Sequence record: MT161459.1
Direction: 5' to 3' (one strand)
DNA length: 64,000 nt
A program made the position numbers and the translations under genes. This document shows positions 3,099-63,921 of the stretch, piece by piece (position 1 is the stretch's first letter; each line of letters begins with the position of its first letter). A model generated the notes under the pieces. The model ran no database searches, was not told the origin of the DNA, and saw nothing but the letters and a program-made list of their open reading frames with translations.

Positions 3099-3102
3099 TC
3101 GG

Positions 3103-3135
3103 TTGACCCAGGGATCGTTCTACCGGATGATCCCT
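3103..3135 (+). promoter_or_regulatory. Early promoter with inverted repeat around -10
   Basis: TTGACC-17bp-GATGAT; AGGGATC/GATCCCT. Confidence 0.65.
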
Positions 3136-3159
3136 ATATCCAAACAAAAGGAGTTCACC

Positions 3160-3336
3160 ATGAAAGCCAAGCAAACTCGAATCGAAGTCATCCTGTGTTT
3201 CCTGTGTACGATCATGATGGCAGTAACTATGGTTCTGATCTACGTCGATCGCGATTGGAATGCCGTTTGGACGTCCTTCGGTGCAGTTGCTTGTCTGTAC
3301 GGTGCTACGCACTTCAAAAAGATCACAAGAGGTTAA
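3160..3336 (+). CDS. Small membrane protein (two hydrophobic segments)
   Basis: AAGGAG RBS, ATG 3160. Confidence 0.7.
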   Translation: MKAKQTRIEVILCFLCTIMMAVTMVLIYVDRDWNAVWTSFGAVACLYGATHFKKITRG

Positions 3337-3338
3337 TC

Positions 3339-3584
3339 ATGTCAAATGTATCATTGTCTCAACCGGCTGTTCGTCAGATCGCTGAGTGGGCTGAGCGTAA
3401 CGCTCAAGCTATCGAAGTTCAGTTGGGGTCACATCGTGCGTACACCATCGAAGGTATTGTCGATGAGATGAACCAGTTCCTCGCAACTGTTGACAACATC
3501 CTGGAAATTCCGTTTGGCTGCAGCTTCAATGTAGACATGCCAACCCTTAACGTCATCCGTACAGCAATGGAGACAGTCAAATGA
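3339..3584 (+). CDS. Hypothetical protein
   Basis: GAGG RBS; ATGA overlap with next gene. Confidence 0.7.
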   Translation: MSNVSLSQPAVRQIAEWAERNAQAIEVQLGSHRAYTIEGIVDEMNQFLATVDNILEIPFGCSFNVDMPTLNVIRTAMETVK

Positions 3585-4723: not shown

Positions 4724-4726
4724 CGG

Positions 4727-4764
4727 TTGCCTTTCATGGGATAGGATGAGATGATTCCTATCCC
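4727..4764 (+). promoter_or_regulatory. Early promoter with inverted repeat around -10
   Basis: TTGCCT-17bp-GATGAT; perfect 9-bp GGGATAGGA/TCCTATCCC. Confidence 0.65.
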
Positions 4765-4783
4765 TAATCTAGAGGAATAAATC

Positions 4784-5839: not shown

Positions 5840-5901
5840 CCGTGGTAGATAAACTCGGTTGGGCCTTCGTTATAACACTAATGATGATAAAGGAAACTGC
5901 T

Positions 5902-6465
5902 GTGAATAAAACTATCGTTCTCGTTCTGGTTCTCGTGTTTGGCCTGGTTATTCTGCCGATCGGTGGGTTTGTTGGGATGTACGTCTCCAACGCAAACACT
6001 GCTACTCGGTTTGAGACCAACATCGAGAAGTTCCACAAGGACTCTCAGAACACCCTGAGCGCGTACACCAACAAGATCCGCGACATGGCCCAGATTCCGG
6101 ATATGTACACTGCTGACCTGAAAAAGGTGATCGATGCTACGTTCCAAGGTCGTTACGGTAAGGATGGCTCTAAAGCAGTCACTCAGTTCATGACTGAAAA
6201 CAATCTGCAGTTTGACTCCAGCATGTACAAGAGTCTGCAGGTCGCAATGGAAGCAGGTCGCAATGAGTTCAAGCTGTCCCAGACCAAGAAATTGGATGTG
6301 TGTGGTGGTTATGAGAACCATCGGAACTTCGTAATGAGTGGGTTCTTCGTTACGATGGCAGGTTTCCCGAAGAAAGATATCGACAAGATGTGCGCTATCG
6401 TCCTCGACAAAGAGACCAACAACGCTTTCGAGACTGGTGAGACTAGCTCCATCAAGCTCCGCTAA
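5902..6465 (+). CDS. LemA-like membrane-anchored helical protein
   Basis: AAGGA RBS + GTG 5902; single N-terminal TM then helical domain ending ...GFFVTMAGFP as in LemA-like proteins. Confidence 0.6.
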   Translation: MNKTIVLVLVLVFGLVILPIGGFVGMYVSNANTATRFETNIEKFHKDSQNTLSAYTNKIRDMAQIPDMYTADLKKVIDATFQGRYGKDGSKAVTQFMTENNLQFDSSMYKSLQVAMEAGRNEFKLSQTKKLDVCGGYENHRNFVMSGFFVTMAGFPKKDIDKMCAIVLDKETNNAFETGETSSIKLR

Positions 6466-6468
6466 AAT

Positions 6469-6492
6469 AAATCCCGCTTCGGCGGGATTTTT
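6469..6492 (+). terminator. Rho-independent terminator
   Basis: AAATCCCGC-TTCG-GCGGGATTT-TT. Confidence 0.9.
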
Positions 6493-6494
6493 CG

Positions 6495-6528
6495 TTGTGC
6501 AGCATCGCACGTTATTGGATACTAACGT
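6495..6528 (+). promoter_or_regulatory. Early promoter with inverted repeat around -10
   Basis: TTGTGC-17bp-GATACT; ACGTTA/TAACGT. Confidence 0.55.
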
Positions 6529-6570
6529 CATTGGGTCGACAGACCAACCAAACAGCAGAAGGACACAACC

Positions 6571-6801
6571 ATGAACATCGAACTCATACAGAACTCCAAA
6601 CACGCCAACCTGCTCAACGAAAATGAAGTTGAGATCGCAGTCACCATCGATGGCGCATATACTCGGATTTTCGATGTGTATGGCAAGCCGACTGGTCGTA
6701 AGAATGGTTTTACCCCGACTGGGGCTCTGTCACAACGTGCTATCAAACAATCTGAATTGAAAGCGGTCATGAAGTTCCTGACCGACAACGACCACATTTA
6801 A
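6571..6801 (+). CDS. Hypothetical protein
   Basis: AAGGA RBS; first gene after promoter. Confidence 0.75.
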   Translation: MNIELIQNSKHANLLNENEVEIAVTIDGAYTRIFDVYGKPTGRKNGFTPTGALSQRAIKQSELKAVMKFLTDNDHI

Positions 6802-6812
6802 TCGGAGTTATC

Positions 6813-7244
6813 ATGAAAAACTATCAAGCGTTGATCCTGGGTGGCGTAATAGCTTCCAGCGCGTTCGTTCTGGGAATGAATAGCGTCGAGGTGGTCAAGA
6901 TCCAAGAGACTCCGATCCAAATTACAGACAAGAGACCTATCGATGGTGGTGAGAAGTACAATCCGGAGGCAGTATATGTCGAACAGATCAAGGACTCATT
7001 TGAGGATCTAGAGAATGATATTCTGTCATCAGCTCGAGAAGAATCTGAAATGAGGGATCAGATTAGCGATGTCGGATTTGATCGGTTGATGAAAATCAAC
7101 AACAAGATCGTCGAGAATCGAAAGTTCGTGGTACAACTCCGTTGTCGCTCATACGACAGACGTTACCACTTCGACGACAATCGCGATGCTGTGCTGTACA
7201 AGCAGGCTCAGGTTATTTGTGCTGCTGTTGGCGAACACATCTGA
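6813..7244 (+). CDS. Hypothetical protein with N-terminal signal/TM segment
   Basis: GGAG RBS; hydrophobic N-terminus. Confidence 0.75.
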   Translation: MKNYQALILGGVIASSAFVLGMNSVEVVKIQETPIQITDKRPIDGGEKYNPEAVYVEQIKDSFEDLENDILSSAREESEMRDQISDVGFDRLMKINNKIVENRKFVVQLRCRSYDRRYHFDDNRDAVLYKQAQVICAAVGEHI

Positions 7245-7447
7245 TGTGGGCCATATTCAAAAGGAACGGAGATCTCGTCCGTTCCGGCATTAAAACTGAG
7301 AAGGGAGCGAAGAAAATCGCTAGCCAACGAGGTCATGCTATAGTAGGATTCATTATCGGGCACGATGTATACCTCGTCCAACGTAAACTGAGCTGCATAA
7401 GATCTCAGTCGTGGGCCCGAGAACCTTGGAGGAAAATCCATGTATAG
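7244..7447 (+). CDS. Hypothetical protein
   Basis: ATG overlaps previous stop; MWAIFKRNG... Confidence 0.65.
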   Translation: MWAIFKRNGDLVRSGIKTEKGAKKIASQRGHAIVGFIIGHDVYLVQRKLSCIRSQSWAREPWRKIHV

Positions 7448-7610
7448 TCTCCACCACGGAATCAAAGATTTCGATGGGATAAACAAGTGCCACGTAGTCA
7501 TAGACGGATACTCATACAAAGCAGTGATCCGGATGGTCTACCCAAACCACGTAGTAGCGTTCGTTAACGGCAAGAACGCTATCGTCAAGAAAACCAACAC
7601 ATTCAGATAA
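7440..7610 (+). CDS. Hypothetical 56-aa protein (not in ORF track)
   Basis: GGAGG RBS, ATG 7440, MYSLHHGIKD...KTNTFR-TAA; fills the gap exactly. Confidence 0.7.
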   Translation: MYSLHHGIKDFDGINKCHVVIDGYSYKAVIRMVYPNHVVAFVNGKNAIVKKTNTFR

Positions 7611-7618
7611 GGGATCGT

Positions 7619-8101
7619 ATGAAATTCGAAGTGGGACACTGGTACAATTTGGACGCTAAGCGTGCTGATGAGTTCGCGGAAAGCTGTGAAGATAATGCAG
7701 CAGTTCTCCAGACGGTAATTCAACCATTCTACGTATTGGAAGTGAATCCGGCAACTGGCGGAGTCGTTCAATTCGAGAACGCGTATCATATCAAATCAGA
7801 GATCGGAGATCTCGATATCATCAGCGGTATCGATGCGTACATGTTTGTCGACTCTCATCCAATCCATCCGTGGTTGATGCACCATGGCAATGCAACTGAG
7901 ATGACCTATATTCCCGAGCCATTCCGTACTTGGGATCCCAAGACTCCAGTACACACCACAACGGTCGAGCACGAGGTGGTTGATGTATCCCAAATGTGTC
8001 AACTGATTGGCATCAACAACGATCCCATCAACGCAAGCGCTATCTGCTATCAGATGGACTATGGCTACCGTTATGGTTGGAAAAACTGGAGTGCCGAATG
8101 A
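7619..8101 (+). CDS. Hypothetical protein (possible member of a G-x-x-Y-x-F paralog family)
   Basis: ORF track; MKFEVGHWYNL start. Confidence 0.75.
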   Translation: MKFEVGHWYNLDAKRADEFAESCEDNAAVLQTVIQPFYVLEVNPATGGVVQFENAYHIKSEIGDLDIISGIDAYMFVDSHPIHPWLMHHGNATEMTYIPEPFRTWDPKTPVHTTTVEHEVVDVSQMCQLIGINNDPINASAICYQMDYGYRYGWKNWSAE

Positions 8102-8586
8102 TCCAGAGTAAGTTTGTGATCGAGTCTGTCTACGCAGCATTCTGCAAACAGACTTCAATCTACCCGCCGACCGTTTTGGTCGGCCCTACTACCAAACAGA
8201 AGGATGAGCAACGGATCATCCAAGGCTGTGAGCCACTGTATAGCTTCTCAAACACACTGCTGTCTGAGACCAGACAGGCTTATTTCGATATCGAAGTGGC
8301 TTATTTGTTCGCGGATAATATCAAGCTACCGTACTTAGCTAAAGTTATCGGTAAGTTTGCGGCGTTGGTGGAGATCGCCTACAAGCAGATGAAGCTGGTG
8401 TACTCCAAGGATCCAATCCTGAAAGAGTACTTCGTCACCGCATTCCCAGATCGTATGGAGGAATATTCAACAGTTGTATTCCACCTTATGATGCAGGATA
8501 CTGGGGGCTCTCAAGAATGCATCGATGCATTCCGAGCTGAATACAAAGAAGTGCAAGCAGCGATGCGAAAGCGTATCGCGAAGTAA
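8098..8586 (+). CDS. Hypothetical protein
   Basis: ATGA overlap; MIQSKFVIE... Confidence 0.7.
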   Translation: MIQSKFVIESVYAAFCKQTSIYPPTVLVGPTTKQKDEQRIIQGCEPLYSFSNTLLSETRQAYFDIEVAYLFADNIKLPYLAKVIGKFAALVEIAYKQMKLVYSKDPILKEYFVTAFPDRMEEYSTVVFHLMMQDTGGSQECIDAFRAEYKEVQAAMRKRIAK

Positions 8587-8606
8587 CAATCCAAAGGAGT
8601 TTTGGA

Positions 8607-9656
8607 ATGAAAAAGTACAACAAAGCAGTAGTCAACGGTCGTTTTGAAATCCCGCACGTAGCCCATCTGGAGATGATCCGGATCGCGAAGAGTGTAGCTG
8701 ATAAGGTCTACATCGTTATTGGCTCGGCGAGTGCCTTCCCGAATATCATGAACCCGTTCCGTCCAGCTGAGCGTATTGCCATGTTGAAGGCAGCTATCAA
8801 GGACTACGGTATGGACTACCACGAATTCGAGTTTGTGCCAGTTGATGACAACAACTATCGCAACGCGCGTTGGGAGGCAGATATCCGCGACGCTGTCAAT
8901 GAGGTCGGTTCCGATAAGATCACAATGGTCGGATATCACAAGGACAAGAACAGCTGGTGGTTGGATACGTTCGGTTGGGAGTTAACCAGCGTACCCGAGC
9001 AAAAAGTCAACGGCTGGACTATCAGTTCTACTGACATCCGTCATGCATACTTTAGTGGTGCTGACGTTCGAGCTCTGCATCACGACAGTCTGACTCCATC
9101 CACGCTGGATTGGTTGGATAACTTCAAGATCAAGAACCCGATCGAGTACGCTCGTCTCCACGCAGAGCACGCGTACAATCAGAAAGAACTGAATAAGTTC
9201 AAGGCGTATCCTTATGCCACTTCTCTGAACTGCTGTACTGGCGATGCTGTAGTAGTGTGCAACGGTCATCTGCTGGTCACGATCCGCGGTAACATGCCTG
9301 GTTTGGGTGCATATGCTCTCCCTGGCGGTCACAAGGACTCTAACGAGACCTTCAAAGAGTGTGCCATTCGCGAGCTGAACGAAGAAGTTGGTCTCAAGGT
9401 TTGTGAACGTGTTATTCGTGGCAGCATCAAAGAGACCAAGATCTTTGACTACCCAACTCGCAGCTACCCAATTTGCAAGCCTACTCTGGGCGTGTTTATT
9501 GAGCTGATGCCAGATAACAACGGCAAGCTGCCGAAGATCAAGCCGAAGGATGAAGTGCGTGACGTCCTGTGGATGCCATTGCATATGGTTCGCCGCAATC
9601 GTCACAACTTCTTTGACGATCATTACGACATCATCAGCTACTTCTGCGGTTTGTAA
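8607..9656 (+). CDS. natV: Bifunctional NMN adenylyltransferase / ADP-ribose pyrophosphatase (NadM-Nudix, NatV-like)
   Basis: GRFEIPHVAH (HxGH variant), ISSTDIR, Nudix box GGHKDSNETFKECAIRELNEEVG, FFDDH. Confidence 0.9.
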   Translation: MKKYNKAVVNGRFEIPHVAHLEMIRIAKSVADKVYIVIGSASAFPNIMNPFRPAERIAMLKAAIKDYGMDYHEFEFVPVDDNNYRNARWEADIRDAVNEVGSDKITMVGYHKDKNSWWLDTFGWELTSVPEQKVNGWTISSTDIRHAYFSGADVRALHHDSLTPSTLDWLDNFKIKNPIEYARLHAEHAYNQKELNKFKAYPYATSLNCCTGDAVVVCNGHLLVTIRGNMPGLGAYALPGGHKDSNETFKECAIRELNEEVGLKVCERVIRGSIKETKIFDYPTRSYPICKPTLGVFIELMPDNNGKLPKIKPKDEVRDVLWMPLHMVRRNRHNFFDDHYDIISYFCGL

Positions 9657-9661
9657 ATACT

Positions 9662-9682
9662 AGCCACCTTCGGGTGGCTTTT
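9662..9682 (+). terminator. Rho-independent terminator
   Basis: AGCCACC-TTCG-GGTGGCT-TTT; same hairpin as at 2612. Confidence 0.85.
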
Positions 9683-9728
9683 CATTTGAGTACTGTATAA
9701 TGATCGCATCAACTAAGAGGGAATCACC

Positions 9729-10160
9729 ATGAGTAAAATATTCAGCCAAGAACGACTCCAGAAAGTCTCCAAGTATACTGCGATTGCTGGTATGATGTGG
9801 GTCGTAGGAACGATGGGCAGCTGTATGACTCAACCAACTCGAGTCCAAACGATTGGCGAGCTCCAATCATGCTACACTAGGATGAGTGGATCGAAACACT
9901 CCATCAGTGAGTACTTCTATTGCGACTTCAAATACGGCAACAATCAGTACCAGGAGATTGCATACCGACCTTCTGCTTATATGAAGATGAAAGGGACTGA
10001 TGGGACTAAGTATCACATCGAGGTACCAAATCCGGATTTGGACGCCCGATCTAAGTTCGGACTGTGGGGTTTGCTAATTCTTGGGATAGGCATCATTGGG
10101 ATGATCGCGACGTCCAAATCATCAGGGTCGGATTTTCCAAGAGGCCGCGGATATTTCTGA
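9729..10160 (+). CDS. Two-TM membrane protein with extracytoplasmic loop
   Basis: GAGG RBS; two hydrophobic segments. Confidence 0.75.
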   Translation: MSKIFSQERLQKVSKYTAIAGMMWVVGTMGSCMTQPTRVQTIGELQSCYTRMSGSKHSISEYFYCDFKYGNNQYQEIAYRPSAYMKMKGTDGTKYHIEVPNPDLDARSKFGLWGLLILGIGIIGMIATSKSSGSDFPRGRGYF

Positions 10161-10166
10161 TGGACC

Positions 10167-10173
10167 CTAAATA
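10167..10173 (+). promoter_or_regulatory. Late promoter
   Basis: CTAAATA, same motif as upstream of structural genes. Confidence 0.6.
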
Positions 10174-10200
10174 GGGGATAACTCTATAAGGAACAGTCAG

Positions 10201-11493
10201 ATGGAATACAATTTTAACGATTATGTTGCAGTGCACGCGGAGATGGATGTTTTGGCCGAAAACAAAGAGGCGATGGCTCTCATCAAGACGTTTGATGGTA
10301 CAGCCAAGAATTCCCGCGGTGCGTTTATCGCGAAAGCAGTTAGCGATCTGGGCATGAACGCAACCACCGCTGGCGCGTACTGGCAGCGTAACAAGAAGTA
10401 TGCAATCAGTCAGGGTGCTGCTGCAGTTATGACTCCGCCAGTCCACAAACCAGCTCGATCAACTAAGGCATCCAACGTCGATGTAGCGTCAGCGGTTACT
10501 GCTAGCGTTGCCGATTGGGGTCGAGTTGGTCAAAAGGCATTGCCGCAGAATGGCGTGACTATGGGCCCCCTAGTCATCGAAACTGGTACAACGACGACGA
10601 AGGCGACTGGTACGTTTTACGGTATCAAGAATGGGACTACGGGCAACTACACTGGGTGGATCATTTTCCCAACCGAAGGGTATGCCAGTAAGATCATAGA
10701 CAATACCCGCCCCGTCGCGCCCTCGATGCCAGTGGATAAAAATCTGAATGACGGTCTACGAGAAAGTATTATGAGAATTGGTAAGGCTGTCGGTATGACG
10801 TCCAGTAGCATGATGGGCGTCATCAAAGCTGCTCACGATGAGTACAAGCGTAATCAAGAAGCCGGTTTCAACGGATCTACAGATCTCGTTGCGCGAGATG
10901 CATGGTCCAAGTCCCTACTGCAAACATATCGCGACTGGGTAAGTAGCGGTCAGAAAGTTCTGAAAATGGAAGGACGTTATCTCGAGAGTCAAGGTGACGG
11001 TTATATGAGCATGGATGGCGGCGGTTATCAGGGTCGTCCATACAAGTTCGGCGCATACAACTCCGGCACATACCGCTTGCTGGGCGTTGTACTCTTCCCG
11101 AAAGAAGGATACGCGTACTACACAGACAAAGATGGTAAACGTTGTCAACCGGCCATCGTAACCAAGGAATTCGCCAAAGAGCTGATTACCAAGGTTCGAA
11201 ATCTGGGCGAGGTACTGGACATTTCACCGGATAGCATGATCTCATCTATCAACGCCACAGCTAATCGGATCGAAGCTGAATCTATAGCTGCGAAGGGAGC
11301 TATAGGTGATGTCAAGAAGTATTGCGCTATGGCAGATTCCATTATCAAGGATCTTCTTGAGCTCGAGAAACTTGCATCCGTGATCAATCCGCACGTCAAG
11401 AACGATGCACTATCTCGCGTCGTCAGCTATCAGTCATCGGAGATGCGCAAGAATCTCACCGCGACCAAGCAGTGGGCTAACGATCTCAAATAA
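10201..11493 (+). CDS. 430-aa protein with internal domain duplication; candidate virion internal protein
   Basis: AAGGA RBS; repeats GWIIFPTEGYA / GVVLFPKEGYA; late promoter upstream. Confidence 0.8.
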   Translation: MEYNFNDYVAVHAEMDVLAENKEAMALIKTFDGTAKNSRGAFIAKAVSDLGMNATTAGAYWQRNKKYAISQGAAAVMTPPVHKPARSTKASNVDVASAVTASVADWGRVGQKALPQNGVTMGPLVIETGTTTTKATGTFYGIKNGTTGNYTGWIIFPTEGYASKIIDNTRPVAPSMPVDKNLNDGLRESIMRIGKAVGMTSSSMMGVIKAAHDEYKRNQEAGFNGSTDLVARDAWSKSLLQTYRDWVSSGQKVLKMEGRYLESQGDGYMSMDGGGYQGRPYKFGAYNSGTYRLLGVVLFPKEGYAYYTDKDGKRCQPAIVTKEFAKELITKVRNLGEVLDISPDSMISSINATANRIEAESIAAKGAIGDVKKYCAMADSIIKDLLELEKLASVINPHVKNDALSRVVSYQSSEMRKNLTATKQWANDLK

Positions 11494-11495
11494 AC

Positions 11496-11519
11496 AAAAC
11501 CTCCTTCGGGAGGTTTTTT
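11496..11519 (+). terminator. Rho-independent terminator
   Basis: AAAACCTCC-TTCG-GGAGGTTTT-TT. Confidence 0.9.
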
Positions 11520-11520
11520 G

Positions 11521-11561
11521 TTGCCTTGCATTTCAGATCATGTAGAATGATCGCATCAACT
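11521..11561 (+). promoter_or_regulatory. Early promoter and shared leader
   Basis: TTGCCT-16bp-TAGAAT; GATCAT/ATGATC IR; AATGATCGCATCAACT identical to 9699-9714. Confidence 0.6.
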
Positions 11562-11575
11562 GAGGAGAAACAACC

Positions 11576-12013
11576 ATGTCCAAAGAATACAGTATCCAAA
11601 CTCTGACTCCAGGTAACATTGATACTCATAAGTGGTATCGCTTTCGAAGTGATATGGCACGCGATCAGTATGTCAGAATGGGGTTTAGCGTGAACCACGC
11701 ACTCGCTAACATCGTTTCGATAGGTAGTAGATTCCGAATCCTGTGTACCAATTCATTTGGAGTAACCGAGATCGTTACTGATCTTGGTCAGAAATTAGCG
11801 TCCGAATCCACTATTATCTGCCATCGCGAGTATTCCCAGTTTGTGACAGACATCGAGATTGAAGTCGAAGAGGATGAGTGCAAGCCGACTAACGCGGACT
11901 ACCTGAGAGCAACTGTGTTCTATCTGACCGATGGCAACGAGCCAGTTGCTCACATGACACTCGCGGACATCTGGACATATTATCAACGCGGTTACAAGGT
12001 AGAAGAGAAATGA
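11576..12013 (+). CDS. Hypothetical protein (paralog family)
   Basis: GAGGAG RBS; KWYRFRS motif. Confidence 0.8.
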   Translation: MSKEYSIQTLTPGNIDTHKWYRFRSDMARDQYVRMGFSVNHALANIVSIGSRFRILCTNSFGVTEIVTDLGQKLASESTIICHREYSQFVTDIEIEVEEDECKPTNADYLRATVFYLTDGNEPVAHMTLADIWTYYQRGYKVEEK

Positions 12014-12450
12014 GTAACGATCTGAAATGGCAAGTCGGAGTATCTTACTGTTGGGGCTCGACCGCACGTCGTTCCAACTTCGAGCAACATCATCCCGAGC
12101 ATTTTGGACTGCTGTCGAACCTCAAAATAGGTGATAGATTTGTGGTGACTCGGCTTATCGGAAATCGAACTGCTGAAATCCGGTTCAGCGATGAGACTAC
12201 GTGTTGTGTCCTGTTGACTCCCCAGCACAGGTTGTCATTTGCAACTTGCGCCGGAACCAACCGCGGGAACGTTGACGATAGCATCGAGGCAGTGAAATGG
12301 TTCATCGGTCAGAATCCTGGAGCTATGGAACTCAATCCCACTCTGAATGAGATGATCAAAGCGTACCGGATCGCAATCGATCGTGCTCACGATCTGCGAG
12401 AAACTATCGCCCGAGCTAAGTCTGAATTAGCTGAACTGGACATGTTGTAA
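12010..12450 (+). CDS. Hypothetical protein with C-terminal coiled coil (paralog family)
   Basis: ATGA overlap; VGVSYCWGS motif. Confidence 0.8.
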   Translation: MSNDLKWQVGVSYCWGSTARRSNFEQHHPEHFGLLSNLKIGDRFVVTRLIGNRTAEIRFSDETTCCVLLTPQHRLSFATCAGTNRGNVDDSIEAVKWFIGQNPGAMELNPTLNEMIKAYRIAIDRAHDLRETIARAKSELAELDML

Positions 12451-48982: not shown

Positions 48983-49001
48983 TATTTATACTTCTATTTA
49001 G
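48983..49001 (-). promoter_or_regulatory. Tandem late promoters for gene 20
   Basis: Minus strand CTAAATA (48995-49001) and TATAAATA (48983-48990). Confidence 0.75.
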
Positions 49002-55037: not shown

Positions 55038-55826
55038 CTAGAACGCTTCTAGATCATCGAAAGAATCGGGTATAGACAGCTTGTGGGGTTCTACTGGGAA
55101 TACTACTGGATTGACTCCGCCTCCGATGAGGTTATCGAACTCTTCCACGAAGGTATCAGCTTCCGCAGCAATTGCGTTATCCTCGGAATATTCTTCGATA
55201 TTGGTATCGGCACGACCGTCCAACATACGGATTGGGTCCAACTGAGAGTCGAACAGCAGATCTGTAGCGTCGAACTCCGGCTTGAGTTCCTCTCCAGAAT
55301 AAACAAACTTCTGAGCGGTGATTTTGTACTGACTAACTTGACCAGCTTGTAGGAATGGAGCATTCGGTTCCACCCAGATCACCTCAAAGAGACCCTTGCT
55401 CATCGGGAAGAATATCAAGTCCCCTTCTTTAACTACTTCGCCATCGGCCTGTATACTGAATAACTCTGGACTGACTACAAGAGTCATCTCATCATTCACC
55501 TGCATACCGAACTTGCTAAAGAACTCTTGCTGACCGCTAAACCCATCGAAGCTCTCGATATACATAGCAACTCGATACGCTTTCTTGAATTTGGATTGAA
55601 GGTCCTCTCCAAACAGTTTATCGAAGTTGACAAACTCTCTCCGGATATAGAACATTTCAATCCCCTTCATTTGAACCGCTTCCGATACAAGCGATCGAGC
55701 GAGAGCTTGGGTATTTGCGTTGTTGAAGTTATTCACGAACGGATTTGTAATGTGATTGTCGTGGGTATCGTTATAGCCAGACTGATTTTCCAGTCTGGCA
55801 AATAGATGCGAACTTTTCTTGTACAT
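55038..55826 (-). CDS. 14: Neck protein
   Basis: LFARLEN, E.VQM.G.E.FY..REFV..D..FGEDLQSKF, FFSKFG..V.DE. Confidence 0.96.
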   Translation of the reverse strand: MYKKSSHLFARLENQSGYNDTHDNHITNPFVNNFNNANTQALARSLVSEAVQMKGIEMFYIRREFVNFDKLFGEDLQSKFKKAYRVAMYIESFDGFSGQQEFFSKFGMQVNDEMTLVVSPELFSIQADGEVVKEGDLIFFPMSKGLFEVIWVEPNAPFLQAGQVSQYKITAQKFVYSGEELKPEFDATDLLFDSQLDPIRMLDGRADTNIEEYSEDNAIAAEADTFVEEFDNLIGGGVNPVVFPVEPHKLSIPDSFDDLEAF

Positions 55827-55829
55827 GTC

Positions 55830-56750
55830 TTACCCCATGATAATCGGTAGGGGCTCTTCTAGAAGCAGAAGTTCCTGACGCAACGTTTCTTTCTCCATCC
55901 TCGCTTCCTCGATCAGACGCTGACCGTCGATGGTAACACCACCAGGGAGAGCCATGCCTTGGTGTTTGGCCAATATCTGACCCCACACCTCTTTGACGAG
56001 CGTAGTGGAGTAGTCTTTGACCCAACGAACGTTGAGCACGCCTTGATCGGGGAATTCAGATCGCTTTTGACCTGCGAGATTTTTGGGCAGTCGCTTGAAC
56101 GGATCTACCCACATATCAGCGATACTAGCTGGGTCTTTTGATGATCCAGCGCGACCATTTGATCCAGCGATGCCTTGGACAGATCTTTCGATTTCCACAA
56201 AGTTCTGGACATACACTTCCATGATAATGAGATCATCCTCGCGGAAATTGCCAGTCAGTTGCAGGATGCCGTTGATGGGATCCAACCAGTAATCAGGAAG
56301 TGGATCTAGTTGATCCATCATGAGATTCTGGTAGCTATTGAATTGAGCAAAGAACCCGATGTTGCCTAGAGCTCCAAATGGACCATGGTAGCTGATCCCT
56401 TGTGGGCCGCCACCGAGCACCGTCATGAAGTCTGTCATGAAGTTCAATGTAGCGCCTCCCCCAAGTCCGCCCCAGAGTAAACTCTTCTGGCGAATGATTT
56501 TGGAGATGGCAAAAATTGGATAATGGCTTAGATCGATGTAACCAGACTCCGCTTGAGTCTTGTCCATCTTGACGGTGATGTAAGCCTTGTTGAGAGCATC
56601 ATGATGATACTCTTTGTATAGCTCGAGAGCTCGCCCGATGCTATCATAAATCTGATCCTCGGTGATCTCGATCTGGATCACAGGTGCACCAAGACGGCGC
56701 AAAATTAGATCCTTGAGATCCCTTGGGTTCTTGACGTAATTGAGCGCCAT
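55830..56750 (-). CDS. 13: Neck protein
   Basis: NPR.LKD.ILRRLGAP.I.IE.TE.QIYD.I.RALE, WG..LAKHQGM.LPGGVT.DG..LI.EA. Confidence 0.96.
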   Translation of the reverse strand: MALNYVKNPRDLKDLILRRLGAPVIQIEITEDQIYDSIGRALELYKEYHHDALNKAYITVKMDKTQAESGYIDLSHYPIFAISKIIRQKSLLWGGLGGGATLNFMTDFMTVLGGGPQGISYHGPFGALGNIGFFAQFNSYQNLMMDQLDPLPDYWLDPINGILQLTGNFREDDLIIMEVYVQNFVEIERSVQGIAGSNGRAGSSKDPASIADMWVDPFKRLPKNLAGQKRSEFPDQGVLNVRWVKDYSTTLVKEVWGQILAKHQGMALPGGVTIDGQRLIEEARMEKETLRQELLLLEEPLPIIMG

Positions 56751-56759
56751 GGTGTTTCC

Positions 56760-56948
56760 TTATTTGTGAACGATAGGTTGAGCTACTTCATCGCGAGCAT
56801 TCTGGACGCGACTTTCGATAGCGGTAGTGTCATCGGAACAAATGTTGTTGTCTTTGCGTCCTTCGAGGATGCGAACCAACTCTTTCAGGATACACAGAAG
56901 AACTTCTGTGCCAACCTTGCGGAGAATGGCTAATAGGATTAATTGCAT
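56760..56948 (-). CDS. Small amphipathic protein
   Basis: AAGGA RBS; 62 aa; hydrophobic/basic N-half. Confidence 0.65.
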   Translation of the reverse strand: MQLILLAILRKVGTEVLLCILKELVRILEGRKDNNICSDDTTAIESRVQNARDEVAQPIVHK

Positions 56949-56957
56949 AACTTTTCC

Positions 56958-57131
56958 TTATTTGGAATGGCGCACCGTGCCCCAATGGCCGCTGCGCACT
57001 TTAATTGAAACGTCCGTCGACTCGATGAGCTTGTATGCTCCATCGACCTTGATATACGCTTGTGCAACCTTATATTTACCGTTGCACTTAATCAATGGAA
57101 CTCCCACCCGATCTATATGTTCAGCTGTCAT
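56958..57131 (-). CDS. 57-aa beta-rich protein with repeated (Y/I)K(V/C)xGx(Y/W) motifs (not in ORF track)
   Basis: GGAG RBS; MTAEHIDRVGVPLIKCNGKYKVAQAYIKVDGAYKLIESTDVSIKVRSGHWGTVRHSK. Confidence 0.75.
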   Translation of the reverse strand: MTAEHIDRVGVPLIKCNGKYKVAQAYIKVDGAYKLIESTDVSIKVRSGHWGTVRHSK

Positions 57132-57145
57132 AAGCTCTCCAGTTA

Positions 57146-57171
57146 GGAGTGGTGGACGAATCCACCACTCC
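57146..57171 (-). other. Perfect 11-bp hairpin between genes
   Basis: Minus strand GGAGTGGTGGA-TTCG-TCCACCACTCC, no U-tract. Confidence 0.75.
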
Positions 57172-57172
57172 C

Positions 57173-57796
57173 TTAGTATTTCAAGTAAAGGTGACCGTCT
57201 GGATAACCATCGTCGTCCTGCGGTTCTTCCGTGCCGTACGTGTACATATGGTGCATATGCAACACGATATAATCCTTGATATTACCGTCATCCACCAAAC
57301 AGTGGTCAGCCCATTCGTCACTGCCAGGAGTAATTTCTCTCCGGACGGACGCTGACTGGTTCGGCCCACGAATAAGAACAATGGACGATGTCGGATTCCC
57401 TACAGTCACCTTGTTATCGGTGCCTATTCCAATTAAGGATTTCTGCTCGCGATCTTTCGTCCAACCGTCAAACGTTTGGCCGTAATCTACACTCACATCA
57501 CTCAACACTACGCCAGACAACACCATATCGGTTACCGGCTTAGAGTTTCCATTATTCTTTGGACCAACATAATAATGGAGTCCGTCTTTACTCATCTCGA
57601 TCAAGTTTTTTCTGCCACTATCGGTAGCAGCCTTGATTGAATACTCGTACGGAACAACGAACTCCTTATTGGTAGAATCAGAGAAGAGCAACACAGCTCT
57701 CTTGCTCTCATCTCCCTGCACTACTTGACCGCACTCCGATCCATCTCCATTGTTATGGATGATTTCTGGTAGGTCGGTAATCTTCACGATTGACAT
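57173..57796 (-). CDS. Short fibre-like structural protein
   Basis: N-terminal KITDLP; LIGIGTDNKVTVGN module like Wac repeats; C-terminal PDGHLYLKY. Confidence 0.7.
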   Translation of the reverse strand: MSIVKITDLPEIIHNNGDGSECGQVVQGDESKRAVLLFSDSTNKEFVVPYEYSIKAATDSGRKNLIEMSKDGLHYYVGPKNNGNSKPVTDMVLSGVVLSDVSVDYGQTFDGWTKDREQKSLIGIGTDNKVTVGNPTSSIVLIRGPNQSASVRREITPGSDEWADHCLVDDGNIKDYIVLHMHHMYTYGTEEPQDDDGYPDGHLYLKY

Positions 57797-57810
57797 ATTC
57801 TAAGTCCTTC

Positions 57811-59409
57811 TTACGGGGTAATGACATTTCCTTCTTCTGTACCCATTAGTCGCCCGGATTGTGTAGCCATTAGGTTCTTCTTGGAACTGACTATTCTAGT
57901 TGTGTTTGTTTGCACTGTTCCAAATCGATTAGAGTACTCTGCGTAGTACTGGAGTCCGTAGTCGTAGGATGCACCTATTACCACAGTCAATACAGGCTTT
58001 GTAGCCCCTTCAATTGGTCCATACTGCGTTCTCCACTGAACCTTATCCCATCCAGCTGCAGTTGTTGGGATATTCAGAGTTGCTCCTGACGTACCTACGT
58101 ATGACGGATCTGGCTGCTTGGTGATCTGTGGAAGTAACTTTCCGATCCATCGGAAATCTTTATCCTCGACTCCGGCCATGGTCACGAACCAAGGTTCGAA
58201 ACTCCCAAGCACAGATTCTCTGGAAATATTGCCCGACCCCTCTTCGAGGTTGAACAGATAGTTGGTCTGGTTGAAATACAGCGCAAACTGTTCTACAGTC
58301 AGACCCTTCGTCTTGTAGAACTTCGATCCGAATATAGAATCGAAAGATCCTATGATTGGCTGCGCTGGCTTGATCTGGCTTACCAACTTACCATTCACGT
58401 GAAGTCGAATATTGCCTACATATCCACCGGCTACGTCGAACCATAGACCGAACCCCAGAACCACATTCGGTGGCAGAGTTCCAACTACATCAGATTCAGC
58501 TACGATAACACCATCTGACATGACAAACATAGTGTGACTCGATTTGCGATAGCCGATACCAGTTGACCTAAAGTCATCGGATCTCGATAGCATCATGATT
58601 GAGTCGCTAGCTGTATCCGACATGACGATACTAGACTCAACGTGATGCGTACCTTGATCCAGATTCAATGTGTGGTCGAATTGCATCCAAGAATTATCCA
58701 GAATCACCGCATTGTACGTCACGGTACGCGGAGTCGCTTGGTAGCTTAACAATGCGCTAGATTTCGTCACCTGCGGAGCTTGAATCTGGATATCGCCACT
58801 GTCGTTGTAATCCACACCAACCCCAATATTGAACTGAATTAGACAATCCTTGAGCGCTTTGAACACGCATTGGACTCGCGTATTAGCTACCAGTTCCGGT
58901 ACTGTGGGGAATGGTGTAATGATCTGCAAATATTCAGATTGACGATCTGCTGGGACTCCATCCGCGTAGATATCCAAAGACTTGCGTCCAACTTGCAGAT
59001 TGATTCGCTTGATCATAGCGCTAGCGTTGTACGTCTCGCCTTGTCTCACATAGATGCGAGCTTGGAAGAACATCCGACTCTGAGCAGCCTTGAACGTATA
59101 TGATCTGCTGTATTCTAGATCGCTATTCGCATACGTAGCGTACGCATTGCCACCAGCTGATGGAGCGTTAGAGAATGCACTCCACCCAGGAGGTGGAGTC
59201 CCAATTACAGTACCGTCGATGTATGTGAAGTAGTCAGATCCATTAAGCATCCGACTATTCGTTACAAGGTTTTCGTCAACTGGATCGTAAGTACGTCTCC
59301 ACGTTCCGCCGGAGAAAACCCAAGCTACTGCATCTCTCCAGTAGCCACCATAAACTTTTGGCGCTGCCTCGTGCAGCGCCAGTTTGTCGTCGTAAATTTT
59401 GATAGGCAT
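57811..59409 (-). CDS. Putative adhesin: carbohydrate-binding-like, LamG-like and Ig-like domains
   Basis: N-terminal KVYGGYW...VFSGGTW; ITKQP...QW...I.GAT..L...Y.N..G.V Ig pattern; C-terminal LMATQSGRLMGTEEGNVI. Confidence 0.65.
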   Translation of the reverse strand: MPIKIYDDKLALHEAAPKVYGGYWRDAVAWVFSGGTWRRTYDPVDENLVTNSRMLNGSDYFTYIDGTVIGTPPPGWSAFSNAPSAGGNAYATYANSDLEYSRSYTFKAAQSRMFFQARIYVRQGETYNASAMIKRINLQVGRKSLDIYADGVPADRQSEYLQIITPFPTVPELVANTRVQCVFKALKDCLIQFNIGVGVDYNDSGDIQIQAPQVTKSSALLSYQATPRTVTYNAVILDNSWMQFDHTLNLDQGTHHVESSIVMSDTASDSIMMLSRSDDFRSTGIGYRKSSHTMFVMSDGVIVAESDVVGTLPPNVVLGFGLWFDVAGGYVGNIRLHVNGKLVSQIKPAQPIIGSFDSIFGSKFYKTKGLTVEQFALYFNQTNYLFNLEEGSGNISRESVLGSFEPWFVTMAGVEDKDFRWIGKLLPQITKQPDPSYVGTSGATLNIPTTAAGWDKVQWRTQYGPIEGATKPVLTVVIGASYDYGLQYYAEYSNRFGTVQTNTTRIVSSKKNLMATQSGRLMGTEEGNVITP

Positions 59410-59418
59410 GCGTATTCC

Positions 59419-62400
59419 TTAGTTGACAAACTCGAAGAATACATCGCCTTCTTTCGGGTTTGCTGGTTTATCGGTTGCGAAGTTGCCGTAGTAATATGAC
59501 TCGGTCCAAGCTCCGTCGCGTCTTGAGAATCGTTTACCGTTCTTCGGCGCTTCGTATGCATTGGATGTCATTACTATATCTCCATTCACCGTTACTGCAC
59601 TCTTAGAGTTGATCACGGTGTCTGCAACAATATCCCCAATAACAACTTGGTTGTTACTAGCTCCGTTGTCGGCGATAGCAATCACGTTAACATCAACTCT
59701 GTCCAACATTCCGCGAATGCTGGTGCGTTGACTTTCGGACGGCTGTGCGAGGGCAAACGACATTACCTTACCATTTAGCTTGGTATACGAAGCAGCGTTG
59801 CTCAGATCTACAACTGTGTCGGATCCTTGAACGGAAGCGCTACCGACAACTACTCCAGCAGCCTTGTAACTCTTGCCGGCGTTGATCGACACATCAGCAT
59901 CTGGGTTGACCCCGTTGAATATCTGCGTCCATGAGTTGTTGCGTCTTGCGTAGTACTTCTGATCGTTCGGAGCATCAATACCATCGTGCCACACTCTATG
60001 AGTTGCCTCACCGATGGTAACGCTTGGAACTGTTGCGAAGATCGTTGGAGCCTTGATGTCACCAATAACCAGCTTGTCGGTCAGCATAGTCAGGATATTG
60101 ACGTCCTGGCTCAGGATACGACCGGTTATTTTGGTCCCTTCCGCCATCTTAACGTTGTCCAGCGTACCACCAATCGTGACTTTCCGGTTGGTTTTATCGC
60201 CGATCACAATCTCGCCAGTCGGAGCTGCGTAGATGATGTCTACTACACCGCCGTTGGTGTTCCCAGTCAGTTTCATTGCACTTTGCAGTGCAATACTCTG
60301 AGCGCCAACCAGATCCCACTTACCAACTCCAGCCTTGCAAACGCGAGTGTATTGCATTCCGTTGTTTGGAGCTTCTTCGCCAATTCCGCCGCCACCGCCA
60401 CCTGGGTTGAACGCTGTCCACGCATGGTCTTTGCGAGCGTAGAATGCGCCATCTGCTGGAGCATCCAGTCCGTCGTGCCACACTTTGTGATCGAAGTTGC
60501 TACCACGAATATGGACAGACGATAGATCGTCTCCCTGAGCACGAATCACAGTCTTGTGAGAATCGTTTCCGACGACCAACTCATCCGACACGTTGATAGC
60601 CATCAAACTTACGGCATTGCCATCAGTATCGCGACTAGCAATACTGCTACCAGCTGCGATTGTCAGATCCGCAATATCACTACGCACAGACATCGGGATC
60701 TTAGTGTCGCCGAGATCCAACCGAGAACCTGCAGTGTTGTTGCGAACGATGTTATACGTGGTAGTTCTTCCATCAGATCCGGAAATTGCAGTATCTGCAG
60801 TCATCTCAAATCCAACGCGCGGATCGATGTCTTGTACGAACTCAGCGAGGTTGCCGGTGTGCAGCATTTCTTTGGTTTCTGCGCCGTAGGTCACGGTCAT
60901 GGACTCGCCATCAGCTACACGGAAGTCGATCGAGCTGCGCTTGATCGTCAACTTATCGGTCGTTGCGTCGATAGCAGGCAATCCGCCAAATGTAATGGAC
61001 GTTGCATCCAACGGCTCGACCAGCTTGCCGCGGATTGCTATGTCTGTCGCCGATTGGCCAATCACGATCAGGTTGGGCTTCGATTCGCGAGCTTCGTGAG
61101 ATACCAGCACAACGCCTTGTGGAGTTCTCAGAGTTCTAGTTGCGCCAACCACGATGTCATTATTGAACGCATCGACCCACTCCCACTTACTATTCACAAA
61201 CTTACGAACGTATGACGCGTCAACGTTCTGCGCAGTTGGATCGAGAATGAAACCACTACCAGCGATATACGGTTTGTACATCCGGTCGTACATCAAACGC
61301 CCAGCCTCTCCGACCCCAATTTGTTGGTATTCGGTATCAGCGACGTCTTTAGTACCGCGGATAACTTCCTTCAACCCAGTTTTGGGAGTATCGATCGTCT
61401 CGCTAAAGTTTTTCAGTTTTGGAGTGTGATCCAAGTTAACTACGTCACTCAAAGATTTCAGGATGCCATCATGGCGATCGTAGTCATTAGCTTGTTTGAG
61501 GACCTGAGTTGCTAAGTCGCCACGCAGGCCGTCAGTTGGGCTTAGACCAACCAAACCTTCGAGGTTTGCAACCTTTTCTTGGCTGATCTCAATCTCTTGC
61601 CAAGCGGTCTTTTGACTGACTGTCGGCTTCCCGACGTTGTATTTCAGCTCGATAATATCCCGCTGAGCGGTAAACAGATCGGTCTGGTTGGCACCAACGT
61701 CTCCGCGTACAGATCGCGTATATTCCCAGATGTTGTTGACTGTAATCTGTTCCCCAGCGCGGTTGTTGTAAACCATTGGGAATCCCGCGGTATTAACAGC
61801 CACGTCTAACCGTGCAATATCCTTAGACCCTTCGTCAGCATGCAGCTCGGTTGCAGTCAATCGGTCGTAGATTGTCTTCCCTTCGATGGCAGATGTCGTC
61901 GGACCCATCTCGTTACGCAGATCGCGAGTGTTTCGGATTAGTACATCTGGCGTATCGCCATCCCACCACTTTTCCAAACCGGTAATACGTGTCTCATGGT
62001 TGGTAATGGTTTCCCAGTCGCGTTCTACTTGACCTTTGACTCCAAGTCCTGGAGCGTCTACATCTGGATTGCCGTTGACGTCAAACCCTTTGTAGTTACC
62101 CAACATGGTCTTGATGTTGCGAATCTCTTGGCGTACGTTAGCTTTTGGCTCAGTTGGTTCCTGAGTCCCGATATCTACTTTGATTCCAGCAACGTTGCCG
62201 TCAGTGACAGCCAGCGCATCGTGAACCTCAGTGACCTGGAGCTTCAACTCAGCTTCCGATTTCTCAACGGCAGTGACTCGATCGTATATGTTAGTGCCAT
62301 CACCGGTAGCGTTGATGATCTCGTCGTGTACGTTGATCAGATCAACTACTTTATCCAGCACGCCTTTGGATACGTTGATGTTGTCGTTCAAGGTAGTGAC

Positions 62401-62571
62401 GTTGACTTGGACCTTAACCGACCCGCGGTTCAGCGCACCTTCGTTGGTTAGTGCACTGTCAGCTCCATCTAGTTCCTCCCCGTCTTGGATCCAGTCAATA
62501 CGAGATTGGCCTGCTGCTGGCAGGCCATCTACATACGGTAACTGGTGCAAATCTTTTTTCTCAATCGTCAT
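59419..62571 (-). CDS. wac: Fibritin (collar/whiskers), extended to about 1050 aa
   Basis: LPYVDG.P..GQSRI.WI..GEEL.GAD matches T4 Wac N-terminus; coiled coil; several foldon-like motifs; CTAAATA at 62601-62607. Confidence 0.93.
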   Translation of the reverse strand: MTIEKKDLHQLPYVDGLPAAGQSRIDWIQDGEELDGADSALTNEGALNRGSVKVQVNVTTLNDNINVSKGVLDKVVDLINVHDEIINATGDGTNIYDRVTAVEKSEAELKLQVTEVHDALAVTDGNVAGIKVDIGTQEPTEPKANVRQEIRNIKTMLGNYKGFDVNGNPDVDAPGLGVKGQVERDWETITNHETRITGLEKWWDGDTPDVLIRNTRDLRNEMGPTTSAIEGKTIYDRLTATELHADEGSKDIARLDVAVNTAGFPMVYNNRAGEQITVNNIWEYTRSVRGDVGANQTDLFTAQRDIIELKYNVGKPTVSQKTAWQEIEISQEKVANLEGLVGLSPTDGLRGDLATQVLKQANDYDRHDGILKSLSDVVNLDHTPKLKNFSETIDTPKTGLKEVIRGTKDVADTEYQQIGVGEAGRLMYDRMYKPYIAGSGFILDPTAQNVDASYVRKFVNSKWEWVDAFNNDIVVGATRTLRTPQGVVLVSHEARESKPNLIVIGQSATDIAIRGKLVEPLDATSITFGGLPAIDATTDKLTIKRSSIDFRVADGESMTVTYGAETKEMLHTGNLAEFVQDIDPRVGFEMTADTAISGSDGRTTTYNIVRNNTAGSRLDLGDTKIPMSVRSDIADLTIAAGSSIASRDTDGNAVSLMAINVSDELVVGNDSHKTVIRAQGDDLSSVHIRGSNFDHKVWHDGLDAPADGAFYARKDHAWTAFNPGGGGGGIGEEAPNNGMQYTRVCKAGVGKWDLVGAQSIALQSAMKLTGNTNGGVVDIIYAAPTGEIVIGDKTNRKVTIGGTLDNVKMAEGTKITGRILSQDVNILTMLTDKLVIGDIKAPTIFATVPSVTIGEATHRVWHDGIDAPNDQKYYARRNNSWTQIFNGVNPDADVSINAGKSYKAAGVVVGSASVQGSDTVVDLSNAASYTKLNGKVMSFALAQPSESQRTSIRGMLDRVDVNVIAIADNGASNNQVVIGDIVADTVINSKSAVTVNGDIVMTSNAYEAPKNGKRFSRRDGAWTESYYYGNFATDKPANPKEGDVFFEFVN

Positions 62572-62610
62572 AGATTTCACCTTATTGGTTGTAATACTTG
62601 TATTTAGCTA

Positions 62611-63921
62611 TCACGCAATGGTATACTTGACGCCAAATATGTTCCATATGTAGCTATTCTCCGCATGTGGAATGAACGTTCTGCCGGATGCGTCAAAGTG
62701 TCCGTACCAGAACAATCCTTCGCAAGGGAGAAGGTTGATTTCGCCGTATCGATTCATCATGCTCTCGATCTGCTGCTTGCTGAACTTGTTGGAGTTGTAA
62801 TACCCACGTCCATCTGCACCACCTTCGACAACAATAGCATCGAAGTTCCACCACGGTTGGTTCATAGTGAATTTACCGCGATCCAAAGGTCCGGCCCAAA
62901 TGTGAGTCCAGCTCTCGACGAGGGTACCGTGGCCGTGGCCATTTGGAGATCTGGTTCCCACTTGCCCATCCACATAGTCTTTGCGCGTTAAAGCGTCTCC
63001 GCGTCCACTTTGTCCAACAGCTGAATACACGTTAGTTGTGACCAGATCGCCAGCCATCGAATCGCCGTAACGATTGATGAATAGCGTAGCTCCATGAGCA
63101 GACAATGCTTTGTTGGTGACATTAGCTGCAGCTCCATGTAAGAGTGCTGTGATCCCATACTGGCTATCCGATGCGATTGGCATAGTTGCTGGAGAAATAG
63201 CTACATCTCCGAGAGATCTTGCGTTGGCTTCAGCTTGAGTAGCCATTCGAATGGTACCAACTTGGGATTGGGACGCTCTCGTGTTGATGAATCCTTTCGG
63301 AGTCACTGCATATCCTTCGTGCAGAGCTGCGTTCGTGATCGGAGATGCTGCGTTCTTGACTGTCCCAGAAGTTGTCTCCGATGCACCGCTGATTGACGTC
63401 ACGGCGAATGTGTCAATTGCCGCCTTTACCTTCATTGGAGTCATTGCAGTTGTATCGTCAACGCCACCCTTCGCTGCAGTCAATGTTGATATGGACATCG
63501 TACCACGTTTGCCCTCCGTAGGAATGGACTTGGTTCGCAGAACGTCCCATAATGTGGATGTGCTCACAGACAGATCGATCTTAGCAGCAGCTTCCTCGCG
63601 TTCCGCTACGGTGCTATATCGAACCAGACCGTATACCGATTCGGTAGCATTCGGGCGCGACATCTTGGTGTGTAACGTGAACGGTGTGACAATCTTAGTC
63701 TTGTCGGTACCGGCCAACACTTCGTCTAGTGTAGCCAACTCGCCGATCCCACTCGCGGTTTCGGTTGCAATTGGAAGTGGCTTGGTTGCATGAGCGCTGA
63801 TGGCATTAGCCATCAGCTGGAGGTCAATAATCGTGGGTCCAAATGCTGCGGTTTTGGTCGGATCCAGAATAACCGCGTCAGCTTTCGAGCTAATATGCTG
63901 ACTGTTGTTGTTCGCTCTCAA
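62611..63921 (-). CDS. 12: Short tail fibre
   Basis: N..QHIS..A..V..DP start; six A(T/S)E...G...(L/I)(A/S)T repeats; TTG start with GGAG RBS. Confidence 0.88.
   Translation of the reverse strand: MRANNNSQHISSKADAVILDPTKTAAFGPTIIDLQLMANAISAHATKPLPIATETASGIGELATLDEVLAGTDKTKIVTPFTLHTKMSRPNATESVYGLVRYSTVAEREEAAAKIDLSVSTSTLWDVLRTKSIPTEGKRGTMSISTLTAAKGGVDDTTAMTPMKVKAAIDTFAVTSISGASETTSGTVKNAASPITNAALHEGYAVTPKGFINTRASQSQVGTIRMATQAEANARSLGDVAISPATMPIASDSQYGITALLHGAAANVTNKALSAHGATLFINRYGDSMAGDLVTTNVYSAVGQSGRGDALTRKDYVDGQVGTRSPNGHGHGTLVESWTHIWAGPLDRGKFTMNQPWWNFDAIVVEGGADGRGYYNSNKFSKQQIESMMNRYGEINLLPCEGLFWYGHFDASGRTFIPHAENSYIWNIFGVKYTIA

Follow-up and report, generated by a model that had tools for sequence, protein, structure and literature searches.

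This report concerns the genes that lie between wac, the gene for the neck-whisker protein fibritin, and gene 13 in a 64,000-nucleotide stretch of sequence record MT161459.1, to which we refer in its entirety as the window. The 5.9-kb region that holds these genes matches that of Aeromonas phage Ahp1_CNU-2021 (hereafter Ahp1; MT161459, Straboviridae) with 100% identity, and every gene of the wac-to-gene 13 cluster is on the minus strand. We found that Wac (59419-62571; 1050 amino acids from its ATG; GenBank AHP1_2811) is a long fibritin with a fibre-like extension, encoded by a gene of twice the length found in T4, and that it is very probably coupled directly to the product of the next gene, a 532-residue protein (57811-59409) homologous to gp218 of phage Aeh1. 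Further, two smaller proteins encoded downstream, of 207 (57173-57796) and 57 (56958-57131) amino acids, may continue this pair as a chain mounted on the whisker; the chance that the chain exists as a whole strikes us as even.

The arrangement that we propose is as follows. The N-terminus of the 532-residue protein, three 13-residue repeats that are predicted to be unfolded on their own, would clamp the C-terminal tails of the Wac trimer in a 3:1 geometry. The protein would then stay at the whisker tip, where its two ConA/LamG-like domains and its Ig-like domain would serve as a head for adhesion or for weak binding of carbohydrate. Its C-terminal tail would in turn recruit an adaptor at the N-terminus of the 207-residue protein, a putative short segment of fibre that resembles the extension of Wac. 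Finally, the 57-residue protein, which would amount to the repeat module alone, may clamp the conserved C-terminal tail of the 207-residue protein.

Wac is a full-length match to phrog_9687, “fibritin neck whisker” (positions 1-1059 of 1059; expectation value, E, 1.4e-299), and it also matches phrog_1056 (E 5e-67). Its residues are numbered here in the 1053-residue frame that opens at a GTG codon at 62580, an alternative start that precedes the annotated ATG (62571) by three codons. In a phmmer search of the Protein Data Bank (PDB), residues 11-357 align to residues 6-340 of T4 fibritin (2bsg_A, 3j2o_A; E 1.8e-28), and by this homology the N-terminal neck-binding domain and coiled-coil shaft occupy 61510-62550. 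A foldon-type region follows at residues 399-473 (61162-61386), where the Pfam family Fibritin_C (PF07921) matches over profile positions 25-92 of 93 (E 9.9e-09). In its N-terminal domain, its shaft, its Fibritin_C match and its position between genes 12 and 13, the protein thus resembles T4 fibritin. In that protein, however, the foldon is terminal and drives self-trimerisation, whereas here the T4-type end point is internal and some 580 more residues follow, comprising three modules and a new conserved tail.

This fibre-like C-terminal extension (59422-61161) contains three related modules, at residues 638-725, 809-889 and 950-1029 (internal blastp, E 5e-13 and 3e-8). A foldon-like hairpin closes each of them, and residues 706-747 and 977-1026 align weakly to the foldon. 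Between Ahp1 and Aeh1, the extensions show 38% identity. Its last 33 residues (59422-59520), which we propose as the docking strand, score 0.70 in conservation over eight lineages, vs. 0.30-0.65 for all other 30-residue blocks of the protein. At the DNA level, it is only at the junction by the wac tail that distant relatives (phage 65, for example) still show ~79% identity. As a separate observation, the best non-Wac matches of a hidden Markov model (HMM) of the Wac tail are the gp14 neck proteins (those of the window and of L002, L005, L006, L007, L024 and L025; E 0.09-22). The two have in common a short acidic-Gly-Asp plus aromatic strand motif, which may reflect chance or a common type of strand.

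The gene for the 532-residue protein starts 9 nucleotides (nt) after wac. The protein matches phrog_9363 (E 1e-184) and is 54% identical to Aeh1p218 over its full length. Its N-terminus (residues 2-40; 59290-59409) is a tandem array of three 13-residue repeats, whose register is kept in each of the 10 lineages inspected, with W30, G35, W37, Y41 and D42 invariant at this end of the protein. Conservation within the family peaks at residues 21-60 (0.73-0.83). In the AlphaFold2 (AF2) model, which was built from 16 sequences and has a predicted local distance difference test score (pLDDT) of 71, residues 1-63 and 511-532 are unfolded. The N-terminus is predicted to be disordered in the monomer (pLDDT 29-35) despite its high conservation. 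A segment that is conserved but modelled as unfolded alone suggests a docking module that folds on binding.

Between these unfolded ends, the model holds two ConA-like/LamG beta-sandwich domains (approximately residues 68-225 and 234-400; 58210-59208; block pLDDT ~57-92) and an Ig-like domain (approximately residues 425-510; 57880-58137). In the PDB, the Foldseek matches of the former include laminin LG4-5, neurexin LNS, CBM66 and galectin (probability 1.0), and the model also matches 4dqa, a Bacteroides carbohydrate-binding protein. Matches in BFVD are to ConA-like/LamG phage proteins and to phage structural, tail and tail-fibre proteins. The lectin-like domains have no match in Pfam, and their sequence identity to the structural matches is 8-14%. 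For the Ig-like domain, phmmer aligns it with the Ig repeats of 9c2d_S, a “putative tail protein” (E 0.002), residues 423-519 match ten multi-Ig proteins, and Foldseek returns 3bfo (target template-modelling score 0.76). The protein closes with a C-terminal tail of two short acidic-Gly repeats (57814-57879; pLDDT <50) that ends ...GTEEGNVITP. The distal domains are more variable than the N-terminus. The ratio of nonsynonymous to synonymous differences (pN/pS), here and below relative to an 87%-identical relative, is 0.05 for this gene. The original prediction had guessed from the sequence that the protein is a lectin/Ig adhesin; the model, with its two ConA/LamG-like domains and its Ig-like domain, fits that guess.

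The phyletic pattern ties the 532-residue protein to the long form of Wac. The 41 phage records that contain the Wac extension are also the 41 with full-length matches to the 532 family (35 from Aeromonas, 4 from Cronobacter, 1 from Citrobacter and 1 from Vibrio), and the 532-family gene directly follows wac in 10 of the 10 lineages inspected. The family is a narrow one: approximately 8 full-length or partial clusters were found among 1.84 billion protein representatives. IMG/VR holds 8 loci, 7 from genomes already seen and 1 from a metagenome, and four loci on metagenome contigs comprise three close Ahp1 relatives and one that is like Cronobacter phage S13. Two phages show single breaks. The annotation of Aeromonas phage Ah1 (MG250483) splits wac into two genes, and its homologue of the 207-residue protein aligns in two pieces; in PX29 (GU396103), the 532 homologue does so. 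These could be sequencing errors or real breaks.

The link between a long fibritin and a gp218 “chaperone” is already known; an Aeh1-type fibritin with a downstream gp218 “chaperone” is said to have been described by Letarov et al. in 2005. The Aeh1 locus is organised like that of Ahp1, with Aeh1p218, p219, p220 and p221 being, in the same order, the homologues of our 532-, 207-, 57- and 62-residue proteins. The Ahp1 locus itself is divergent, with 44-55% identity in these proteins. Letarov and Krisch describe the Aeh1-type long fibritin and two open reading frames (ORFs) downstream of it, and speculate that the long fibritin acts in host recognition (PMC3797505). According to the same paper, Aeh1 Wac produced alone forms inclusion bodies, and fibritin of this type does not self-trimerise; when it was co-expressed with gp218, soluble oligomers resistant to trypsin and to sodium dodecyl sulfate were obtained, in part as unpublished data (PMC3797505). 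Clamping of the Wac tails by the N-terminus of the 532-residue protein would explain why Wac is insoluble without gp218, and hence the “chaperone” effect. The original prediction had proposed a whisker appendage built through matching terminal motifs. Of that proposal, the functional coupling of Wac to the 532-residue protein holds up, on the strength of the common 41 records, the adjacency and the Aeh1 co-expression, as does the modular character of the protein ends (see below); homology between the junctions does not.

The 207-residue protein matches phrog_23703 (E 6e-61) and is 44% identical to Aeh1 gp219. It begins with an adaptor module (residues 1-49; 57650-57796) in which G19, E21, G23, Q24, Q27, A34, F38, D40 and P49 are invariant, and it finishes with a tail (57176-57250) that ends ...DGYPDGHLYLKY. 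These termini are the most conserved parts of the protein, with residues 196-207 scoring 0.93. The family is confined to the Aeh1-like group (14 phage records) and comprises 13 clusters with intact frames, down to 35% identity. No match was found among PDB sequences. The published description of gp219 is that of a protein insoluble alone, and perhaps a pseudogene without homologues (PMC3797505). Judged by its sequence, however, the gene is no pseudogene, because its pN/pS is 0.13, and the gp219-like proteins are a conserved family. For comparison, pN/pS is 0.02 for gp13 and 0.14 for the 62-residue ORF.

The 57-residue ORF was called unannotated in the original prediction, but GenBank already lists it as AHP1_2781, a hypothetical protein. 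It is preceded by a ribosome-binding site (GGAG, 7 nt upstream) and matches phrog_38868 (E 4e-6). Counterparts of 58, 49 and 44 amino acids are present in all Aeh1-like lineages examined, and in the lineage L025 an ORF of this type overlaps the preceding stop codon by ATGA. We propose that it represents the docking module of 13-residue repeats on its own, and that it would serve as a minimal clamp or cap for the tail of the 207-residue protein. Such a role would explain the insolubility of gp219 alone, which parallels that of Wac without gp218 and fits a missing clamp. Between the stop codon of the 207-residue gene and the ribosome-binding site of this ORF lies a perfect 11-bp stem with a 4-nt TTCG loop (57146-57171, minus strand), read from the sequence and also found by a scan. 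It has no T-run on the coding strand, and it could be an element of RNA stability or translational control.

The ends of these proteins recur in other contexts. In a 34.5-kb metagenomic T4-like contig (ENA ERZ27315841 k119_960397; here L008), positions 2842-12054 hold a long Wac followed, before gene 13, by four genes for proteins of 603, 133, 902 and 347 amino acids. The first of these is a 532-family member with four C-terminal tail repeats, so that L008 combines four tail repeats of the 532 type with two adaptor-bearing genes: the 133- and 902-residue proteins both carry the N-terminal motif of the 207-residue protein (phrog_23703 matches). The last ~200 residues of the 902-residue protein align to residues 19-207 of the 207-residue protein, tail included (E 2e-8). 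The gene for the 347-residue protein comes directly after. The N-terminus of this protein matches the 57-residue ORF (E 2e-6; phrog_38868) and is the only part of it that can be aligned to the profile of the 532 family, where it falls on the N-terminus (E 0.009); the protein continues with a stretch that is Ig-like by eye and a weak Laminin_G_3 match. The 532 homologue of Cronobacter phage S13 is followed directly by gp093, a 403-residue protein that joins an adaptor N-terminus of the 207 type to tail-fibre repeats (Pfam PTR). The end motifs behave as portable modules, and this behaviour supports a modular chain.

The same comparison raises the possibility that the 207- and 57-residue genes are decaying remnants, the shrunken and roleless leftovers of a longer chain like that of L008 with its 902- and 347-residue proteins. 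The 207-residue protein does correspond to only the first and last modules of the 902-residue protein, the 57-residue ORF to only the N-terminal module of the 347-residue protein, and gp219 has been called a possible pseudogene (PMC3797505). Further, the 57-residue ORF is poorly conserved; its pN/pS of 0.40 makes it the least constrained gene, a result that is also unfavourable to its proposed role as a clamp. But the frames of the 207 family are intact throughout its clusters, its termini are near-invariant, and its pN/pS is low. The small ORF, for its part, has kept its start, its frame and its ribosome-binding site or translational coupling across lineages that are ~40% identical. Decay is thus an improbable account of these genes.

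If the proteins do form a chain, its length appears to vary, from two proteins in phages 65, CC2 and VmeM-32 to five in L008. The C-terminal tail of the 532 family is present in the Aeh1-like, L025, S13, L008 and L010 lineages and absent from 65, CC2, VmeM-32 and L024, all four of which are without an adaptor-bearing gene. Stated as a correlation, an adaptor gene is adjacent in 5/6 lineages with the tail and in 0/4 that lack it. This pattern is what recruitment of the adaptor by the tail would lead one to expect.

A virion location other than the neck must also be considered. The proteins could belong to the baseplate or the capsid, or else to the long tail fibres, with the gap between wac and gene 13 serving as a tolerated insertion site for late genes. 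The content of that gap indeed differs between lineages, S13 gp093 carries tail-fibre repeats, and Ig-like and LamG domains are also found on capsid decoration and baseplate proteins (BFVD). Attachment elsewhere nevertheless accords poorly with a 532 family whose records coincide with those of the long Wac and whose gene comes directly after wac in each lineage inspected. The Wac tail and the N-terminus of the 532-residue protein are, moreover, the most conserved parts of their own proteins, and the folding of Aeh1 Wac depends on gp218 (PMC3797505). We regard this alternative as quite unlikely.

The Aeh1 results bear on a further question, which is whether a gp218-like protein belongs to the finished whisker at all. 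From co-expression and solubility, Letarov and Krisch took gp218 for a fibritin-specific chaperone and not a virion component (PMC3797505), and this conclusion runs counter to the proposed chain. In its pure form, such an account would have the 532-residue protein help Wac to fold and trimerise and then leave, so that it is absent from the virion; the 207- and 57-residue proteins would be unrelated small late proteins that share the operon by chance. Phage fibre genes are often followed by a chaperone gene, examples being T4 gp57A and gp38, and Tfa, and this habit favours the idea. Yet the 532-residue protein, with its two lectin-like domains and its Ig-like domain, is much bigger and more elaborate than the known fibre chaperones, and among its fold matches are phage proteins of the structural, tail and tail-fibre kinds. 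Its distal domains vary more than its N-terminus, as in receptor-facing parts of proteins; its C-terminal tail tracks the adaptor-bearing gene that follows; and the end modules of the 207- and 57-residue proteins recur on the large fibre and lectin proteins of L008. A pure chaperone therefore seems to us rather unlikely. A 532-residue protein that clamps the Wac tails and stays bound would instead make the published “chaperone” result compatible with a role in structure.

There is precedent for such a dual role. With gp38 (the T2/S16 type, on gp37) and Tfa (Mu, P2, lambda), the product of the gene after a trimeric fibre gene is needed for folding of the fibre, and products of this kind can stay on the fibre tip as its receptor-binding part. 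The 532-residue protein would work alike, being encoded directly after a trimeric fibre gene and having a role in fibre folding. The likeness ends there: the fibre here is a neck whisker and not a tail fibre, the 532-residue protein is much larger and has lectin and Ig-like domains, and no match to the gp38, Tfa or gp57A families was found for it in Pfam, the PHROGs, the PDB sequences or Foldseek. A second likeness is to receptor-binding complexes that are joined, serially or as branches, through N-terminal adaptor domains (the T4 long tail fibre gp34-35-36-37, G7C gp63.1/gp66 and the CBA120 tailspikes), in which consecutive genes encode consecutive pieces with conserved terminal modules and variable bodies. 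Unlike the G7C and CBA120 adaptors, the adaptor modules here match only their own PHROGs, and the chain would hang from the neck. The sole link to G7C is a weak Foldseek match to gp63.1 (E 1.5e-3) in the lectin-like region of the 532-residue protein.

Several further results weigh against the chain as proposed. In L010, the tail of the 532-family protein is kept while no partner gene adjoins it, and the correlation between tail and adaptor is statistically weak, since it comes from a small number of related lineages. For the 207-residue protein, the AF2 model made from 11 sequences is uninformative (pLDDT 34). Searched against the PHROGs at E up to 1, the terminal modules found nothing outside their own families. 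In the literature on this phage group, we found no virion proteomics, no neck structure or cryo-EM, and no binding data.

To these must be added the relationship between the two tail/repeat junctions, for which the evidence is weak. The original prediction held that the tail of Wac is like that of the 207-residue protein, and that the N-terminus of the 532-residue protein is like the 57-residue ORF. Direct comparisons lend these likenesses only loose support (hhalign P = 0.008 for the tails and P = 0.17 for the repeat modules). With an HMM built only from Wac tails, the tails of the 207- and 902-residue proteins come out 36th-247th of the 963 matches listed from 1747 segments searched. Likewise, an HMM of the 532 N-terminus ranks the 57-residue family 51st-479th of 1277 in the 1747 ORF segments searched. 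Since neither of these unbiased models ranked its target family near the top, we do not claim homology of the two junctions. A motif pattern for the tails does match 13/1747 ORF segments, all of them Wac or the 207/902 proteins, but it was designed post hoc, after both families had been seen. A module of the form L-I-x-I...V-x-V-G, which was said to be common to the 207-residue protein and Wac, can be traced from one to the other only transitively and weakly; a comparison of the two family profiles gives a probability of 10% and an E of 0.003.

The proposed geometry invites one speculation that we put forward tentatively and consider somewhat doubtful. The tails of each trimeric segment, unable to trimerise alone, may be nucleated by the monomeric three-hairpin module of the next product, with one hairpin per chain. 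We term this a “trans-foldon relay”. If it is true, each junction would be at once a folding switch, an assembly checkpoint and a 3:1 symmetry adaptor.

The surroundings of these genes are those of a T4-like late cluster. A gp12-like protein (62611-63921, minus strand; 436 amino acids) is encoded upstream of wac, and gp13 (55830-56750, minus strand; 306 amino acids), gp14 (55038-55826, minus strand; 262 amino acids) and gp15 downstream. The four ORFs between wac and gene 13 that the original prediction had singled out are real and conserved, and the terminal strings quoted in it are all present in the translations. Their absence from T4 holds at the sensitivity of tblastn, by which the four proteins match only phages of Aeromonas, Cronobacter, Citrobacter and Vibrio, apart from one further match, to the Ig domain only, in Escherichia phage PJNS034. 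A Pfam scan of all ORFs matched only Fibritin_C (in Wac) and a neck-protein family (in gp14). The intergenic gaps from wac through gene 13 are 9, 14, 41, 9 and 9 nt, which we count as operon structure, and good ribosome-binding sites precede the starts of the 57-residue ORF, the 62-residue ORF and gp13. The T4-type late promoter motif has no copy within the wac-to-gene 13 cluster and none between gene 12 and gene 13; its exact occurrences in the window are only at 48983, 50155 and 51637 (minus strand), far downstream of the cluster as it is transcribed. The cluster may be transcribed by read-through from upstream, or the phage may use another late-promoter motif.

The last ORF before gene 13 (56760-56948; 62 amino acids) matches phrog_20154 (E 4e-22) and occurs in 14 phage records. 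The N-terminal half of its product is amphipathic and helical-looking. The ORF adjoins gene 13 on the upstream side in most long-Wac lineages, being found there in the Aeh1-like phages, CC2, VmeM-32, L010, L024 and L025 (homologues outside the Aeh1-like group were recognised by eye); it is truncated in phage 65 and absent in S13. We considered this protein as a member of the chain and rejected it, because it occurs independently of the 207- and 57-residue genes, in lineages that have them and in others that lack them. It is probably a separate element.

Relative to the published account of Aeh1, what is new here is the conservation of the gp219-like family, the lectin/Ig architecture of gp218-like proteins, the finding that the end modules are common to bigger proteins in relatives, and the co-occurrence of the Wac extension with the 532 family. 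The first of these corrects the record, in that gp219-like proteins constitute a conserved family and not a pseudogene. Further, the junctions may follow a code, in which a triple 13-residue repeat would receive a conserved tail, and an N-terminal adaptor an acidic one. If a relay code of this kind is true, phages could gain or lose lectin/Ig heads and segments of fibre at the neck whisker, and the chains of different lineages would comprise two to five proteins. The whiskers of T4-like phages are usually seen as simple sensors for fibre retraction. If the whisker of these phages bears a lectin/Ig head and plug-in segments, the neck would constitute a second, modular organ of adhesion.

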